From Zygnema circumcarinatum SAG 698-1b (lineage: Eukaryota > Plantae > Zygnematophyceae): 64,000 nucleotides of DNA. The notes under the pieces are model-generated. The model was not told the origin of the DNA, did not search any database, and saw only the letters and a list, made by a program, of their open reading frames with translations. Position 1 is the stretch's first letter, and every line of letters starts with the position of its first letter. The stretch lies in assembly GCA_037447605.1 (NCBI GenBank), contig CM074815.1, positions 558,001-622,000 of the forward strand, read 5' to 3'. This document shows, piece after piece, positions 19,636 through 52,944 of this stretch. The translations under genes and the position numbers were made by a program.

Positions 19636-20160
19636 TAGTATCGTATCGTATCGGTCTCTGAAAAGTGTATCGCATCACATCTTCAAGTATCGTATCGTAT
19701 CACCTCATAATCATAGATTGTATCGTATCGTCTCATAATTCTAGAGTGTATCGTATCGCAATACAACTATCGTCTCGTAATGTATCGTCAATGAAAAAAT
19801 GTATCGTATCGCATTACAACTGTCGTATCGTACTGTAACGGCTGTGTTAAAGTGTATTGTGTCGCATTGCAAATACCGTATCGTACGTATTGAAAATGTA
19901 GAGTGCTTATATCGTATAAAAATATCGTATCGTTCCGTATCGAAATTGTAAGTGTATCGTATCAAATCACATCTATTGTAACGTATCGAGATAATTTAGT
20001 ATGTTGAATTAAAAGTTTCGTATCGAATCGTATCGACTTTGGAGAGCATGTCGTATCGGAATGTAAATACAGTAACGTACAGTATCGGATTTATGAAATG
20101 TTATCGTCTCGCATTGAAAATTTCGTATCGGTTTCATCTTAAGGATTACAGTATATCGCA
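19636..20160. repeat. Degenerate (TATCG)n pentamer satellite, ~520 bp
   Basis: Dozens of GTATCG/TATCGT units in one orientation within an AT-rich background. Confidence 0.85.
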
Positions 20161-20805
20161 GCACTAGGTCGCTCTGTGTGGCAGTTACGGCGAATTTTCC
20201 AGGCTGAGGTCGATGGTTCAGACCTTGTCCCGGTAAAAGAAGAGTGGGAGGAATTGAGTGTAGAGGAGCCGGAAAGCCGCAGGATGGGATGGGAGAGAGA
20301 GAGAGGGCGAGGCGAGGGTGTGAGCAGAAGCAGGCGAGAAGTGACGTGAGGGAACTCAAAATGGGAGTGGAATGAGGAGACCGAGGCCTGAAGGTCTCCG
20401 ACGGCCGGTCGCAGAGAGCGGAACTAAGAAGATGGAAAATCAGTTGTAATCGCCCACAGCCTACAGTATCTTGATTTACCCCCCCTGCATTCAACCTGTC
20501 ATTCATACCAAGCATTCAATCCGCACGCCAAGACAAAGTAGCAAGGACAGTCGTCTTGTTACAATTTCAGCCCAAGTCACAAGAAGAACATTCTTTCGCT
20601 GCTCCTCCAAGCTGGCTGATGCTGCTGCTGTCTGCACACGAAATGTCACACGCTTCTATGCTTCCGTTCTTCCTGTGCATAAAAATGTACAAATGGTACG
20701 GCTTTAAGTTATTAAAGAAAGTGCTCCGCTGTATTTTGAACCGCTTGGTTGCATGCTAGCCAGCCTCTCACTTTTCCTACTAAAGAAAGAAAAAAACAAA
20801 GTATT

Positions 20806-24402
<3,597 letters not shown>

Positions 24403-37731: not shown

Positions 37732-40337
37732 CTATCCCCGACCATTGTGGGATCTGAAAAACTCGAAGTCCGGGTGATGCACTTGCTGCTGCTGCAGCCA
37801 GTTGTCTGCGTGCACTTGGAGCTGGCTCATGCGCTTCCGCTCAGATGCCAGGCCCTGCTGGGACCACACGCCACCCTTCAACTTATATGCTGCCATTCCA
37901 AAAGCAGGCATTCTCATCAACTGCTTCTTGGATTGCTGGAGTCCACCATTGGATGCTGGCAGGTCTGGTTGCCGATATGGAACAGGCAAGTTAGTCGTGC
38001 AGTAAGCCTTCGAGCAACTCCCACAACGATCTGCACATACAAATGCACATACCACACATAAGACGCGGACATAAGTGGAAAAGAGGACTTTCAAGGAGCT
38101 GTGTCCCATGCTATAGGGGCATGGATTTCAGAAGCCTGATTTGACCAATCTCATGTTACGCGCTAAACAAAGCAAAGCATTGAGAACAAGTCCGCCAAGT
38201 GTTCCTCAACAGCCAATGTAGAAGTACCTGCTATACATGAAAGAGGAGTCGACAGAGAGTGGTAGGTCAAAAAAGAGGCCGCAAGATCGCGTAGAGTGGG
38301 ACCAGTGGGTATTCTGTACACAGGATACCTGCACATGTCCATGTCAATGTGTCAGCGTCAATCAGACACAGTCAACATTGAGCCAGAAAGGAATAGTCAA
38401 TGCTATTGATAGACAACAAGGCGACTACATCTTACCAGGCCACAGAGAACCAGCTTGCAGGATGAAGGTCAACGCTTCGCAAAGTCTTGATTGCTGGAAA
38501 AAATTGTTCAAGTTCGGCAATCTGCAGCCAGTCAAGCGCGAACATGTTAAACGCTTTACAACAGCGGGCACATGCCTACGAGAACCCTCGTTGTTAACAG
38601 ATATTGCAAATGAATAGACAACATACCTTATCTGTCAAAGGGACTCGTCCGTAGGGTGCGGCATGCTCGAAATATTCGAAAGCTCTATGCTTCTCTCTGC
38701 AGTCGAAACATCTCCTTCCCCAGTCCTGACCTCCTGCGTCTACTTCATCTTCTAAACTCATGACATCGCTTCCTGGTTCACTGCTACTATCGCTTCCCGT
38801 AAATGGAAAGCTCCTGTCCCCATCACTATCGCTAGTGTCGCTGCAGGAATCCTTATACTCTGAGTCGCAGGCTTCTCCATCGTCACATCTCCTGCATCCA
38901 TCATCAAACTAGAATATTTAGAGGAGAACAATGTTTATGCGGTAACATTACCGAGTCAGGGTAACATAGCTTTAAGAAAACAATCCAACACCAGAGCCAG
39001 ACGCGACTGCATAACGGTGTCCACAGCTACCCACACATGAAGCCACGTGATTTTTCCTAAGTTCTAAAGAACATGCATCAGCAACTGCACATTACGCATC
39101 ACTCCCGACACTTCTGAATCTTCAGCCTTCACGAACCAAAAAACAAACAAACCTCATTCTCTACAGACTCATGTCGACTGACTTAGATTTCATGTATGAC
39201 CTTCCTGCTGTGACTCTTCATGCCATTATCTACGTAACCGCCAGACAGTAAGGGCTGAAGAAGGCACCTCATAGATTCCAGTCGGCGTAGAGGCGACCGT
39301 GTATACAGCTGAATCGCCGACAAATATGGCACATAATATTGCACAACATTTTCCTCGCAGCTGAGGGACAAGGGGACACCACATCCATATACACTCCATT
39401 CCTCATATGCTTCCCACACATCTGCGAGCGTAAAGTACGGCACACTTTGTGCGTCGAGGGCATTCCAACTTCCCTTGCTTCCGACTTGTGCTTGCCATGA
39501 TTTACTCTGCAATACAGACAACCAGCCTTCACGAATTAATGTTATGCAAAATGTGGCGGTGGTCCTGAGAATGAGAGAATGCTTCAAACGACTCCAGCAT
39601 GAATACGAAGAATCATATTAACAATCAAATTCATTACAGGGAAAGTCAACAAGCATCCCGCTTAAGACAAGTATCAGGGACAACGGAAATTGCCCAAGAA
39701 TTCCCGGGGAGGAACAATATAGTTCGTTTAGTCCAGGAACCGCGTCATGAATGACACTGGGAACACATACTGCAGTACAAAAAAGGCTTCCGAAAACAGC
39801 GCCCAAAAACTGACGAGCTCCAGCAACTTCCACTAAACATAGGGAAATGCAACTCCTCACTGCAATACAGGGCGGTCGTGCGATACCGGGAGCAACCGTC
39901 ATTGACCGTCATTGAAGGACGACAGTAGAGAGAACAAGCAAGACGCTCAAGGGAAAAGCATGAACAAAACAAGAGATTACCTTTGACAGGTGTTGGAATG
40001 TCACTGCTGGTGTCGTGCTAAGAACGAAGCTCTCAAGATTACAAGGCTGACGCCTCTTTTGCTGCAGCAATCCTGCACTGTCGTAGCTACCGAAAGCTGA
40101 GGAAGGGCCTTCGACTCCATCCTCATACCCTTTGCCACAGAGAGGCCCTGCAACAGGCCTTCCTAGTGTGCATCCATACAGCTGCGCTTGCAACTGTGCA
40201 GCATCATCAGGCTGATACATCGTTCGGAAGGCAAAGTCGTCCAAATATCCTATCAGTTGCTGCTGTTGCTGCTGCTGTTGTTGCTGCTGCTGCTGCTGGT
40301 GCTGCTGCTGGTGCTGCTGGTGCCTGTGTCCTACCAT
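37732..40337 (-). CDS. DUF789 family plant protein with N-terminal poly-Gln; ~6 coding exons
   Basis: [12 protein letters not shown]; [23 protein letters not shown]...[13 protein letters not shown]; [18 protein letters not shown]; [28 protein letters not shown]; [12 protein letters not shown]...HHPDFEFF. Confidence 0.9.
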
Positions 40338-43594: not shown

Positions 43595-46589
43595 ATGGCT
43601 GCCCCCCGCCCCCTCCTCCTCCTCCTCCTCTGCGCCTCCCTCTTCGCCCTCCTCTGCTCCCTCACTCCCACAGCGGCTGCTGCCGGCGGCGGCGGCGGCA
43701 GACGGGCTCTGCGAGAGAGAGAAAGAAGCTTCTCGAAGGGAGGGGGAGGTCTGGAGGACTCCCTCGCGGAGGAGAGCAGCTCAGAGCTTTTGTACGACGG
43801 AGACTCAGAGCCTGCCGACACGTGGGAGTCCCAGTCCCAGGCTAAGGCTGTGGACCAGAGCTGCGCGATGGAGGTGGACGCACAGCTGGGCGCGGCTGGA
43901 GACGCCATAAAGGAGGCTCTCCCGCTGGCCTCGGACGACTTGGCCTGCACGCGGAGGATCCGTCGGGCAGCCATGGCGGCTGAAGGCGCGAAGAAGCTGG
44001 CGGGTACGGGCACGTGGGGGAAGGCGCGCAACAAGGCGGCGTGGGCGCACCACTTTCTCTCTAAATGCGGCGCTCCAGTGGGCACGCGTTTGGCCTTCAA
44101 GCTGACGGAAGCCATTGCCATTCTGGCCACCCCCTCGAGCTGCCTCGCCGCCATAGCCAACGACGTCATTCTCGCAGACACGCTCGCCGGCACGCCCGCC
44201 ATGGACCTTCTCGCTGAGGTGGGGGCCGCCAATGTGGCTGCCTCCTCCAACAGCTATGACCTCACTTTCCGAAAGTCGACTTATACAGGTGGGTAGATAG
44301 AAGCTTCCGTTCCCCCACTGGGTATGAAGAGCCCTCCGTAACTCTGCAAAAGCTGACTGCAATTCTTCACTTGTGTTGCTGCTCATTCATGGCAGGGGCC
44401 CGCCTCCGCTCATCCTCCACCTTCACCTCCGGAAAGTTCTCAGCACGCATTAAGTGTCCAACGGGAGAAAGCGCAGACGGGCTCAACACTGCCTTCTTCG
44501 TAAGTCTCTAACTAAAGCCAAACTCGAACATCACTCCAAGTAGCCTTTTTTTTTTTTTTTGACTGTTACCCCTCTCTCCCCTCTCTCCTTCAATGAGAGA
44601 AGTCGAAGTTATTCTCTCTTCTAACCCTCGCTATCTTGCTGCCACGTGGCCTACATTGCAGCTGTCATCGAATGCGGACGACTCCCAGCGCTCCTCCATC
44701 ACCATGGAGTTCCCCGGATTCGACCGCAGCATTGTGCTCCTAAACACTATGATCGACGGAAAAAGTGGTTGGAACATGGTGGTGGATCTTGAATATGACT
44801 GCTCCGAAGACTACCATGTTTACTCCATCTACTGGACTCCGGAAAAAATCATGTCAGCGCCTTGAAACCCGTCCCATGGGTCATGCCTGAATGCATGCCG
44901 TGCTTCACTTAGGGAGAGAGGGAGAGACAGAGGGAGAGAGGGTGAGAGAGAGGGAGAGGGAGGGAGAGATAGGGAGAGAGAGAGAGGGAGAGAGGGAGAG
45001 AGAGAGGGAGAGAGAGGGAGAGAGAGAGGGAGAAAGGGAGAGAGGGAGAGAGAGAGGGAGAGCAAGAGGGAGAGAGAGAGGGGGAGAGAGAGGGAGAGAG
45101 GGAGGGAAAGAGGGAGAGAGAGAGGGGGAGAGAGAGAGAGATAGAGAGAGAGAGGGAGAGAGAAGGAGAGAGAGGAGAGATGCCATGCACATCAGCCGTT
45201 CCTTGCATGCCTTTCCGTTAGACTGAACAACTATCGTCCATTGCGTTTTGTTGCAGGTGGAAGAGTGACAACACCGTTCTGGACATCTACGACAAGACCA
45301 TGTGGCTATCGAGCCCCGTCCCCAACAAGCCTCTCTATTTGTACCTCGCCCTCACCAACACATGGTCGCTCACTCCCCCAACATGGGGCACGGGAGTACC
45401 CGCCGGGGCCGACTCCTTCACTTCTTCCTTTCACGATGTGGCTTATCAAAGCCCCATTTCCGCCATCCCCAATTTCCCCACAGCATTACCTGATGCTCGG
45501 GTGTACCCCATCGGCATCGACAATGGACTCTATGGCGGCTTTGGGAGGATCAACATCGGATCAGACGCTCAGAACATCACCTGTGACAATAGCCAGTGTG
45601 GTAAGAGGAAAAAAACTCAAAACTCAAAACTCAAACTTCATGCTGATTAGGGACTGATTGGGGGATGCATGGCTAAGGGAGGGGTATTTGAATGAAGGTG
45701 AAGCTCAGATTTTTCTGAGAGTGAACTCACGCTCGGGCTGGTTTTGGGCTGTGCTTTGAACTGCAGGAGGACGGTTCCACAGCACAAGGTATTACGCTTC
45801 CGGAGAGTTTACAGGTTCATTCAAATGTTCTGCTGGCGACACGAGTGGACTCCTCTCCTCTCTCTATGTAAGTTTTCAAGACCCAAAAACTGGGAGCAGT
45901 CGAATGGCAATCAACGCCTAATCTATCCGAAGTGAATCGTCGGTGTGTCTGATTGCAGGCATGTTTAACGAGTGCTGTTTTTTGCGTGTTAGTGATCAAG
46001 CCTTTGCTGACGTTGCGTTTGCCTTTGCGTTTGTGGGCGGCAGCTGTCCTCCAAGGAGGGATACCAAGTGGACGGCCAAGCCGTGCAGGACGAGATCGAT
46101 TTTGAGTGGCTGGGCAAGGACAAGTACAGCGTGCAAACCAACTACTATGTCAATGGCGTGGGGGGAAACGAAGGCTTCATCGACCTCGGCTTCGACTGCT
46201 CCGAAGACTTTCACACATACACCATCCGCTACGGCCCCGCTATGATTCAGTGAGCACGCGCCCTCCCTCCCATCCGGGTCCTCTCTCTCTCTCATGACTT
46301 CCGCTTGCGATGATAAACTCTTTTTCCCTTCACTGCGTCATTTCAAGGCTGAGAAGTTGGCTTTGCTTCTCGGGAGTGCAGATGGCTGGTGGACGGCACG
46401 CTGCGGCAGACGGTGCGGAAGGACAGCGCCGAAACTTTCCCGACAAAGCCCGTCTTCTTCTACGCCTCCATTTGGAACGCGAGCTCCGTCAAGTACGGCG
46501 ACTGGTATTGGACGGGGAAGTGGGACGGGAAGGACATGCCCTTCGTGGCTCAGTACAAGGGTCTGCGAGTCACTCCCCTCGGCGACTAA
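43595..46589 (+). CDS. Secreted protein with two tandem GH16 EG16-like endo-glucanase domains (first degenerate, second with intact DEIDFE); 7 exons (43595-44288, 44396-44499, 44662-44852, 45257-45600, 45767-45867, 46044-46249, 46382-46589)
   Basis: Hydrophobic signal peptide. Domain 1: SGKFSARIKCPTGESADGLNTAFFLSS...SITMEFPG...DLEYDCSEDYHVYSIYW. Domain 2: SGEFTGSFKCSAGDTSGLLSSLYLSS...QDEIDFEWLGKDK...QTNYY...DLGFDCSEDFHTY...FPTKPVFFYASIWNAS. Confidence 0.88.
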
Positions 46590-47966
46590 GCGCGCGCGAG
46601 GGCGACCCCCTCCTCTCTCCTCTCTCCTCTCTCCCTTCCCCTCTCTCTCTTCTCTTTCTCTCTTCCTCTCTTTCGTTCTCTCTCCCGCTCTCGGTCTGTA
46701 AACAAACCGCCGCGCTGGCGGAGGAGTAGCCGCTCAGACGCATGCTGCGTCTGGAGGCTTTTGGCGCGCAGGCCTGCACTCATCAGCAGCATCACCTTGA
46801 TGATGATGATGATGATGACCTGCTGAAACGTGCGGCCCACTGCTTGTGGGCGCGGAGAGGTGGGAGGGGGACTTGTCAAAAGGACTTCACGCGGCGGATG
46901 TGTCGGGCATGATCGTCACTTTCCAGTTTTGGGCGCGAATTTGTTGAGTTTATGTATAGCGGAACCGTTGTAAAAGTAAAATTGTTTAGCTTCTAGCTTT
47001 AGCTGCTATAAATCTAGGACTAAATCTAGGACGTCCTCAATGTACATACCCAACATGTATATTTTTAGAATTTCGTAACTAATTTCAGACACCATTTTGA
47101 TCAGCAACGTTTCATCGTCGTCCAGATTCATAGTTGTCAGTGGCCAGCTACTGGCTTCGAGTTTGACAAGGGCGTAGTCGTGCTTCCGAACACAGCATGG
47201 ATGGCCTGTGAATTCTGCCCTAGTGATTCACTAGGGTGTTAAGAGGTATCCGTCATCCTGCATTTCTACTCGAGACAGAACGAGCAAACCAAGGTGCAGG
47301 CGCTCATCCTCGATGGTTGCATGTCCGTCCAATGGTTGTCATTTGGGCAAGTCAGCGCCATCATCATATCGCGATCATGATCACCTTCATCATCACCATC
47401 ACCATCACCGTACACCGGCAACACTGGCTTCACCTTTAGTCCAGTTGACCATCCTCTCACCATCCCATTTTTCCGTTTCGAAGATCCTAACGAAATCAGA
47501 ACCGACCCTACAAGAACTCGGACACATCATATTCCGTACTGTAGTTGTCGCATAAATACAAATGAATCAGACGAAAAAATTACCTACCTCGTTACTCTTT
47601 GTTCCCTCCTCTCTTGACTGGCCCTGTCCAGCTTATCCCTTAAGGGCACTTCTCTTTATTCCTTCACAAAAAGGACCCCCGCAACACCCTAAACTATTTC
47701 AACACTTCCGCCCTCATCTCCTCGCCATGGAAGAACCACTCAGTCTTTATCACCGGTCTCCTTCATCCCAAACCACTAACTAGCTTTGTACGGCATCGTA
47801 CTTCCCGCAAGTTCGCTCGCATGGCTGTGTTACACATGGTCGTGTAAGCATCATCTCTCTTTCGGATACCCATGCATGACATGATGTTCATCCCTTAACA
47901 CTGCGTCACATCACGGAATAGTCGTCGGAATCTTCTCAGCATGTATGTGAGAAGTCACGGAGATAT

Positions 47967-50900: not shown

Positions 50901-51891
50901 CCTGCTCAGTAGTGACAGCGCCCTGTGGAATCCCACAAAGAAAGTGTCAGAAATAGAGTTCAAGCGCTTTGAGTTAGGTTCCACCATAGCATAGCATAGC
51001 GTAGCATAGCATAGCATAGGGTAGACCGCATCCGGGAAGGCACAAACAAAGAGGCTGCTAGTAAAAAATCTGGGAAGCACACACTGACTTGTGACTGAAA
51101 AATTGATCCACTCAAAGCAAGGGATGACTCAAACCCCCGTGATCTAACCCTCCGTTGAGACACAACGTACAGGAAACGACGACTGTAGCGACACATGCCA
51201 GAACCATTCCACTGCATCATACATCATTCTCTCCATGCAAGATAAGAATCCCCCACACAACACAACAACCAGCAAGCTGCACGACCTTCATCTAAAGCAG
51301 GATTTCACGTCGAAGAGTCGGAGCCATCGGACAAGAAACACAAGCATCAGCATCATTTCTTCCGGTTAGCTTAAAAGGGAACATTCTACCCTAAAGGTCC
51401 CAATCAGAAGCAGCTCCAATCTCCTTATCCCTGTCACTGGGACAAGCGACCACGCTGCAGAATACAAAACCAGAAAAAAGACACCCCAAGTCGAAACTCT
51501 AGAAAGAGACTTCTGAGGAAAAATACACAGACAAAGCATTTTCCACTGTAAATTATCAGTCTTATTTGTTTAGAGGTCGCCTCCTACTGAAAGACACTGC
51601 GACGAGAATTCATGCAAATTTCCTCCATTCCAAAAGACTGACCTGCATGTTCCAAATGATCTCGCCGTTGGTCCATGTGAAGTTGATTGCCCAACCCGGG
51701 GGATTGATTTTGCGAAATTTCTGATAGTTAAACACATTCACCTGCGCTATGTATCCATCACCTGTCCATTGCTGAACGTTCCATTCTATCGTTACATTCC
51801 CTGTTGGATCCAACGGATCGAAAGCCTCTCCCGTTCCAGCAAACATCAACAATACGACCCCAACACATACTACTACCGACAATCTCGACAT
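47967..51891 (-). CDS. COB: COBRA-family GPI-anchored cell-wall protein, multi-exon
   Basis: Signal peptide; AFDPLDPTGNVTIEW; GAVTTEQGDCS; NCCKDGVL; PTCCVSLSAFY...CACAC; CPVSIHYHIK; NYYDYWRAKLTI; GNVQSEFLF...GWGFPRRVFFNGEECVMP; hydrophobic GPI tail. One or two small internal exons were not resolved. Confidence 0.92.
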
Positions 51892-52944
51892 CCTTTCCTC
51901 CCCCCTCATCCTCGCCCCTTCACTCTCCTCCTCCTCCCTCCCTCTCTTTTCCTTTCCTTGCTCCCTCTTCCCTTTTCTCTCCCTCTTGTTGTCCTCTCCC
52001 TTACCTCTCCCTCTGCCGTTATCCCTCTCACTCCTACTCTCTCCCTCCCTCTCCCTTTCTCTCTCTCTCGCTCTCTCTCTCTCCCTCCCTCTCTCCCTCT
52101 CCCTCTCTCTCTCCCTCTCTCTCCCCCTCTCTCTGTCTCTCCCTCTCCCGCTCCCTCTCCCAGACACAGCGCCAAGACAGACCAGTCCCCCACCGCAACA
52201 AAAAGCTCCAACGTATTGGAACAAGGCTGGACCTGGTTCCAAATTGTTCGGGCAGCCCAAAAAACATTTTATCGTCGGGCAGCCGCCAATGGCGGCCAGA
52301 CGTTGCCCTTCCGACCCCACGATTGGTCCGTTTTCCGCAACTGCCGCAACGGGCCTGTGCGTTTCCATGCGCGTCCTTAACGTCTCTGCGTACGAATTTG
52401 AGGCGATTTGACCACTTCAGAACTTCAAAGTTTACTCGTGCGAATGAGAGAATGGACGGCCACAATTTGAGATCGAATGTCGGTGGCAAATCTGGACCGT
52501 CCGTTTGTATTTGTACGAGGCGGTGGCGACGGTCTGCGCACACGAGCGACCGTTCGAGCTTGTTGTGGCCACGTGGCGAGGGCAGATTGGTTGCAGGTCT
52601 AGGCGGGGCAAAAACAGGATCTATGTGGCGGTTAACCGTTTGGCGGTTGAGGATGAGGAGCAGCTTCCACATAGAACCAGTGAACGACCACAGCACATGG
52701 CACATAGCAGCTCTTCTCCATTGTCTCCATTCGTGACGTGACACGAATGCAGCCCCCAAAGTGTCCAACCGCAATTTCATTTCATGCCTTGGGGAAGCCA
52801 TCCATCGTCCTCTACAATGCGGTACAAGAAAAATAAAATAAAAATAAACTATGAAGAAAAATGGAAATTCAAATATGGTCGTTCCGATTTGAATCGCTAT
52901 TCGTAACATGGGCCTCTGGGCTGCACCCTCGCCCTTTGGGTCGA

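Follow-up and report, generated by a model that had tools for sequence, protein, structure and literature searches.

EG16 and EG16-2 proteins of glycoside hydrolase family 16 (GH16) have been discussed as intermediates between bacterial glucanases and the XTHs, the family by which the walls of land plants are remodelled, and they have been treated as single-domain proteins. The locus described here, a gene at positions 43595-46589 of a 64,000-nt stretch of DNA from Zygnema circumcarinatum SAG 698-1b (assembly GCA_037447605.1, contig CM074815.1, positions 558,001 to 622,000 of the forward strand; the whole stretch is hereafter called the window, and positions are those of the window), raises the question of what a GH16 domain that has lost catalytic residues does in front of an intact one, and whether such a pair is peculiar to this alga. 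As judged from the sequence, the gene is real and intact and encodes one secreted protein in which a dead EG16-like domain is paired with a live one, and the tandem layout is that of an old, conserved and unnamed family extending from zygnematophytes to ferns.

The gene model was rebuilt from the window sequence. Seven exons on the + strand give an uninterrupted frame of 1848 nt (615 codons plus stop); all six introns are of the GT-AG type, with acceptors ending in ...gcag, and the reading frame is kept across every junction. Database, family, structure and fold searches were performed with single exons, and the joined 615-aa model was used only for local alignment, hidden Markov model (HMM) and tree work. 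When examined exon by exon, PF00722 (Pfam GH16) matched exons 2 and 3, which belong to domain 1, and apart from these exons 5, 6 and 7, which belong to domain 2, with E-values of 1.8e-6 for exon 3 and 1e-16 for exon 6. A single 344-nt open frame, exon 4, leads from the last strands of domain 1 through a Pro-rich linker into the first strand of domain 2. The original prediction of one protein that has a secretion signal and a tandem of a dead and a live GH16 domain is supported. Note that the signal peptide was called by eye from the sequence; the single-sequence structural model shows a helix at residues 5-23. Further GH16 copies were not found in the 64-kb window.

For both core exons the closest solved structure was grapevine VvEG16 (exon 6, E 9.2e-20; exon 3, E 8e-7), and the identity of exon 6 to VvEG16, counted from the alignment, was ~55% over 60 aligned residues. 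The two domains are 33% identical to each other over 169 aligned residues, with an alignment score (201) far beyond chance (32 +/- 5 for 300 shuffles). The catalytic strand of domain 2, D494-E495-I-D497-F-E499 (46089-46106), has as its counterpart in domain 1 S277-S278-I-T280-M-E282 (44692-44709), and the HMMER alignment to VvEG16 places S278 on the nucleophile, T280 on the helper Asp and the kept E282 on the acid/base. The catalytic loss is confined to domain 1, in which two of the three catalytic residues are replaced (Glu to Ser and Asp to Thr). Two claims made beforehand, that EIDFE is kept in domain 2 (DEIDFEWLG, aligned to E89/D91/E93 of VvEG16) and that the nucleophile and the helper Asp are lost from the S-I-T-M-E of domain 1, were both upheld by this alignment. 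Jelly-roll homology to GH16 was found for both domains, and the E-x-D-x-E strand for domain 2 only; domain 1 is, by this prediction, a GH16 fold and not a GH16 enzyme, and the normal GH16 mechanism is predicted to be unavailable to it. Domain 2 retains 70 of the 85 family-conserved positions (82%) and all of the catalytic residues. The XTH-type extension PF06955 (XET_C) was not matched by exon 7 or by five full-length homologues, even at E 10.

Exon 6 was searched with phmmer against 1.84 billion representatives, and most of the best eukaryote-type matches carried two GH16 stretches. In these tandem matches the first motif is degenerate (DAITLEFLG, DVIGFEFLG, DLISFDFIG, SGVSFDFPG, DAIVMSIFG and others), and the second is an intact DEIDFE[WF]LG. 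Their sources are algae (Spirogloea, Mesotaenium, several Closterium strains and Netrium), mosses (Sphagnum, Ceratodon and Physcomitrium), lycophytes (Selaginella and Diphasiastrum) and a fern (Adiantum), and their database labels are only hypothetical or 'GH16 domain-containing'. With the same dead-then-live order in these four groups, the architecture is not unique to this gene; Trinity transcripts of Netrium and other samples span both domains. Residues ~198-610 of the window protein are collinear with the tandem homologues at 31-42% identity, and with this collinearity, the degenerate-then-intact order and the shared introns (six with Closterium P0017 and four with Closterium P0020; see below) the window protein belongs to the tandem family. 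The best phmmer match had 70% identity over exon 6, and therefore the proteome of this species seems to be absent from the searched library. A profile search with the family alignment added mosses and Closterium, without the window's own protein.

Among the seed-plant matches, no dead-plus-live member was seen. In Paspalum (P0010 / P0167), two intact and near-identical EG16 domains, both with DEIDFEFLG, form sister branches of 0.10 and 0.16; this looks like a recent doubling of an ordinary EG16, either fused in tandem or joined from neighbouring genes by the annotation, and is unrelated to the dead-plus-live family. Tandem GH16 proteins are also listed in EukProt under 'Leptophrys vorax' (P0028 and P0014), and these are tightly grouped with Closterium proteins. 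Given the feeding habit of this vampyrellid amoeba, they probably stem from its algal prey and not from the amoeba itself.

Introns 1 and 4, 2 and 5, and 3 and 6 lie at aligned residues of the two domains, in phases 1, 0 and 2, respectively. The junctions (marked here by a slash) are T-G/A-R in domain 1 and C-G/G-R in domain 2 for the first pair, F/LSS and Y/LSS for the second, and M/W and Q/W for the third. Introns at identical positions and phases had been predicted; the phases and the aligned residues stood, and the exception is the first junction of domain 1, which splits one Gly only. For comparison, the exons of Closterium relatives were mapped exactly onto genomic loci; the angiosperm EG16 P0036, the gene model of which looks wrong at the 3' end, was left out. 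The tandem P0017 shares all six introns (in each domain, one of phase 1 before G-S-R, one of phase 0 before LS[ST]/MSS and one of phase 2 before W), four of the six positions are kept in P0020, and the single-domain P0029 (L005:501-3483) has the same three introns together with the same helical N-domain. Because the same introns are found in P0017 and P0029, they are ancestral to this branch of the family. The matching introns had been taken as a sign of a duplication particular to this gene, a reading that does not survive the finding of the same three in a single-domain Closterium relative and the same three plus three in a tandem one; what they are predicted to record is only the long-ago duplication of an intron-bearing unit. 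P0029 may have the pre-duplication architecture, or may have lost the dead domain secondarily. A recent intragenic duplication was rejected on the intron and tree evidence.

The Sphagnum magellanicum orthologue (L002:1001-2965) is one intronless open reading frame (ORF); its 1965 nt give, on translation, exactly the 654-aa protein. Compared with the 4-11 introns of the Closterium relatives, this suggests that the moss lineage either lost the introns of the gene wholesale or carries a retrocopy.

In a tree of 90 separated domains, the streptophyte sequences formed one clade (support 100), apart from the bacterial licheninase-type sequences. Domain 2 of the window protein lies in this clade with the Klebsormidium subtile protein and the land-plant EG16s, with only a tentative order of the inner branches; the Klebsormidium representative (P0047) is single-domain and falls among the live-domain sequences. 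The dead domains fell into three groups, each mirrored by a group of the partner live domains, as is expected when the pair is inherited together. When the 17 dead domains were constrained to one clade, the tree was 15 log-likelihood units better than that of the quick free search and was not rejected by the approximately unbiased (AU) test (p 0.74). Since one clade of dead domains is tenable, the duplication is taken to be ancient; it is predicted to be older than the diversification of zygnematophytes, and probably also older than their split from land plants.

By comparison of the sequences, the dead domain is a faster-evolving one than its live partner, yet it has been kept from algae to ferns. 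Between Sphagnum and Adiantum, the identity is 37% for domain 1 and 53% for domain 2; between the window protein and other members, it is 21-31% and 40-59%, respectively. The family consensus of domain 1 keeps D-x-I-x-F-D-F-x-G-N, V-L-T, V-N-G, F-D-C-S and W-D on the former active-site strand and the adjoining strands. An AlphaFold model of the Spirogloea homologue P0002 (m90d418c61feb; 35-row alignment) had a mean pLDDT (predicted local distance difference test) of 87.8 and a pTM (predicted template modelling score) of 0.75, with a pLDDT of 85-97 in the dead domain. Its live domain matched VvEG16 with Z 32.6, a root-mean-square deviation (rmsd) of 1.1 A and 43% identity, and its dead domain matched GH16 structures with Z 21-25, so that the fold of domain 1 on which the original prediction depended is present in the model of this homologue. 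The best matches of the dead domain were XTH structures (2vh9, Z 24.9; 1umz, Z 23.6; 2uwb was also among them). The XTH matches, and only these, cover residues 83-331 of P0002, that is, the dead domain, the linker and the first strands of the live domain, and the aligned part makes up almost all of the XTH chain, the stretch of its C-terminal extension included.

A third module had been overlooked in the original prediction: the ~170 residues between the signal peptide and domain 1, for which there was no Pfam match. Single-sequence AlphaFold gave helices at residues 76-112, 116-136, 141-156, 162-178 and 180-198 with pLDDT 70-90. The top Foldseek rows for the bundle were pectin methylesterase inhibitors (PMEI) and the tobacco cell-wall invertase inhibitor, with non-significant E-values, and the top three of an all-against-all structural search were 1xg2_B PMEI (Z 12.9, rmsd 1.7 A, 94 residues), 1x8z (Z 12.1) and the invertase inhibitor 1rj1 (Z 11.6). 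In a MAFFT alignment, Cys118 and Cys157, 39 residues apart, were conserved in Closterium, Netrium, Mesotaenium, Spirogloea, Sphagnum and another moss, including single-domain relatives; this Cys pattern may be comparable with that of the PMEI family. On this alignment the Cys-bearing helical domain is predicted to be an old part of the family. The PMEI profile PF04043 gave no match up to E 10 for residues 71-200 or exon 1, a protein-atlas search with residues 75-210 gave no usable match, and jackhmmer with the N-region found no match among all the retrieved proteins. A sub-threshold match to DUF3077 in the Pfam scan at E 10 was taken as noise.

We regard it as probable, with a fair margin of doubt, that the gene encodes a secreted endo-beta-glucanase of an old three-module family in which the dead domain binds glucan. 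In the proposed order, the signal peptide would be followed by a disulfide-type four-helix bundle, the dead GH16 jelly-roll and the intact EG16-type GH16 domain. Domain 2 would use E495 and E499 to cleave beta-1,4-linked glucan backbones (of the mixed-linkage glucan or xyloglucan type) through the retaining mechanism of GH16; both mixed-linkage glucan and xyloglucan are substrates of the characterised EG16s (PMC8711696, citing Eklof 2013 and McGregor 2017). Domain 1 would be a non-catalytic glucan-binding module that targets the substrate or holds it for domain 2, and the helical domain may have a part in regulating or targeting the enzyme. Glucan binding would be the most likely role of domain 1 because of its long retention, presumably over hundreds of millions of years, its predicted intact fold and its largely conserved cleft strand.

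Several points weigh against this proposal. Binding and activity are predictions for every member of the family, and the splice model is likewise predicted, from canonical sites, frame and homology. For the fold of domain 1, the evidence is that of P0002, which is ~31% identical to the window protein. The window's own domain 1 retains 31 of the 53 positions conserved in domain 1, the second lowest of 17, and its end branch (2.16) is the longest in the tree, which places it among the most diverged dead domains; with a small probability, it could be drifting in this paralogue. The tree came from a quick search, and the fast-evolving dead domains may attract one another (long-branch attraction). 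As for the helical domain, unrelated four-helix bundles followed closely at Z 10-11, such Z values being common for helical bundles, and 'PMEI-like' suggests a likeness at the level of fold, not family membership.

The long end branch and the few conserved positions kept would also suit a decaying paralogue, in which domain 1 is a useless passenger of a working domain 2, or a gene that is not expressed at all. However, each of the seven exons is open and the splice sites are canonical, domain 2 is conserved at the level given above, and domain 1 still scores 116 bits against the GH16 profile, within the range of the family; we consider decay very doubtful. That two adjacent single-domain genes have been wrongly joined is hardly credible, and was rejected on the open frame of exon 4 and the single intronless ORF of Sphagnum; moreover, transcriptome-derived homologues carry both domains, and neither a second signal peptide nor a start codon context was found ahead of domain 2. 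A different role for the dead domain would be to place an acceptor chain in such a way that transglycosylation takes over from hydrolysis in the live domain, which would make the protein a functional forerunner of XTH. The pTM of P0002 points to two domains that are held rather firmly relative to each other, and the best matches of its dead domain are of the XTH type with a range reaching into the start of domain 2; the lack of a PF06955 match shows domain 2 to be without the XTH-type C-terminal extension, however, and characterised EG16s are described as endo-glucanases (PMC8711696), so that we hold this role to be unlikely. In its boldest form, the tandem family and not the single-domain EG16-2 would have been the raw material for XTH, and the acceptor-side extension, to which XTHs owe their transglycosylase action, would be what is left of the junction with a second GH16 unit. 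This origin is without sequence support because PF06955 was not matched, the 90-domain tree took in no XTH sequences, and we give the idea a very slim chance; at the least, the dead domain may supply an XTH-like acceptor platform in these older enzymes.

Another reading starts from the helical bundle, which, perhaps together with the dead domain, could be an intramolecular inhibitor or pro-region that silences the glucanase until processing. The PMEI-like PRO region of group-2 pectin methylesterases probably keeps these enzymes silent in this way. In structure, residues 76-198 have their three best matches in PMEI and cell-wall invertase inhibitor, the Cys118/Cys157 pair is conserved from zygnematophytes to mosses, and the helical domain is also found ahead of the GH16 domain in single-domain relatives, Closterium P0029 among them. 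However, sequence-level searches gave no PMEI match, with nothing from the protein atlas or jackhmmer, the Z of 12-13 is within the range of unrelated helical bundles, and a processing site was not identified between the bundle and domain 1. We judge an inhibitory pro-region to be improbable, and the glucan-binding proposal for domain 1 is retained.

Characterised EG16s are single-domain proteins without a signal peptide (PMC8711696, citing Behar 2018), as the original prediction had stated. This is only half of the picture, because secreted enzymes of the EG16-2 clade have already been described: these EG16-like enzymes of charophytes mostly have signal peptides and are biochemically uncharacterised (PMC8711696; bioRxiv 10.1101/835561). 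Domain 2 resembles VvEG16 (PDB 5dze/5dzf/5dzg/5sv8), its best solved relative, in the DEIDFE strand and in being without the XTH-type extension, whereas the window protein as a whole differs from EG16 sensu stricto in being secreted and in having helical and dead GH16 domains in front. It shares with EG16-2 (Behar et al. 2018; Shinohara and Nishitani 2021, PMC8711696) the streptophyte-algal origin, the EG16-like sequence and, with most of its members, a predicted signal peptide, whereas the dead-plus-live layout and the helical N-domain are not mentioned for EG16-2 in PMC8711696, and the Klebsormidium representative is single-domain. With XTH (GH16_20) it has in common the type of catalytic strand, the nature of a secreted wall enzyme and the lineage, and XTH structures best match the dead domain of P0002; it differs in that XET_C was not detected and in that domain 1 is without the nucleophile. 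With the PMEI and invertase inhibitor family (PF04043) and the PRO region of group-2 pectin methylesterases it would share a predicted four-helix bundle, here N-terminal to a wall-enzyme domain in a secreted protein of the plant lineage; the difference is that there is no match in sequence and that the Z scores of the bundle are not clear of unrelated bundles. The insect beta-1,3-glucan recognition proteins (betaGRP/GNBP), in which the catalytic residues of the GH16-like domain are gone, set a precedent for keeping this fold as a non-catalytic module of a secreted protein. That family (cited in PMC6827312) differs in its unrelated lineage, in having no live GH16 partner in the chain and in its immune function.

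No description of the dead-plus-live tandem or of the helical N-domain was found in the literature on tandem or inactive plant GH16 proteins, which did not cover Behar et al. 2018. Relative to the literature searched, the tandem is an undescribed variant of the EG16/EG16-2 kind, ancient and widespread and not novel to this locus. A conserved secreted form with a long-kept dead twin and a helical inhibitor-like domain is present in zygnematophytes, mosses (including the model Physcomitrium), lycophytes and ferns, and early streptophyte wall remodelling may have used such a modular enzyme. The family is a concrete target for studying the recruitment of pseudo-enzyme domains to binding or regulatory tasks; the gain from the gene of this window alone is modest. 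The features of the gene are listed in Table 1.

Table 1. Predicted features of the tandem GH16 gene (positions in the window)
Feature	Position	Strand	Basis
Exons 1-7	43595-44288, 44396-44499, 44662-44852, 45257-45600, 45767-45867, 46044-46249, 46382-46589	+	Splice and frame reconstruction
Whole coding span, 615 aa plus stop	43595..46589	+	GT-AG introns and continuous frame; residues ~198-610 collinear with two-domain homologues
Predicted signal peptide, residues 1 to ~29	43595..43681	+	Arg5, Leu-rich hydrophobic core 7-22, Ala-rich end
Predicted Cys-containing four-helix bundle, residues 76-198, with PMEI / invertase-inhibitor-like fold	43820..44188	+	Single-sequence AlphaFold and structural matches
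Domain 1, predicted catalytically dead GH16, residues 189-409, spanning introns 1-3	44159..45494	+	HMM envelope 189-409, 116 bits; PF00722 on exons 2 and 3; groups with dead N-domains of homologues
Degenerate catalytic strand SSITMEFPG, domain 1	44692..44718	+	S278 at nucleophile position, T280 at Asp position, E282 kept
Short Pro-rich linker between GH16 domains, within exon 4	45495..45536	+	Exon 4 frame and HMM envelopes
Domain 2, predicted intact EG16-type GH16, residues 424-615, spanning introns 4-6	45537..46586	+	HMM envelope 424-615, 235 bits
Catalytic strand DEIDFEWLG, domain 2	46089..46115	+	E495 nucleophile, D497, E499 acid/base, aligned to VvEG16 E89/D91/E93

Within the gene, a GA-rich microsatellite of ~270 nt (44911-45180) occupies much of intron 3, and a CT-rich tract (46610-46692) lies 3' of the stop codon. 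A very strong purine skew was seen at 20001-24000 of the window (GC skew 0.47, AT skew 0.44-0.51), of which similar repeats are probably the cause. Upstream of the gene there is a DUF789 exon (PF05623, E 9e-23; 39186-39587, - strand), belonging to a plant-lineage family to which no function is assigned. A COBRA-like protein exon (PF04833, E 3e-10; 51613-51900, - strand) lies ~5 kb downstream, so that a second cell-wall gene is a neighbour of the tandem GH16 gene.

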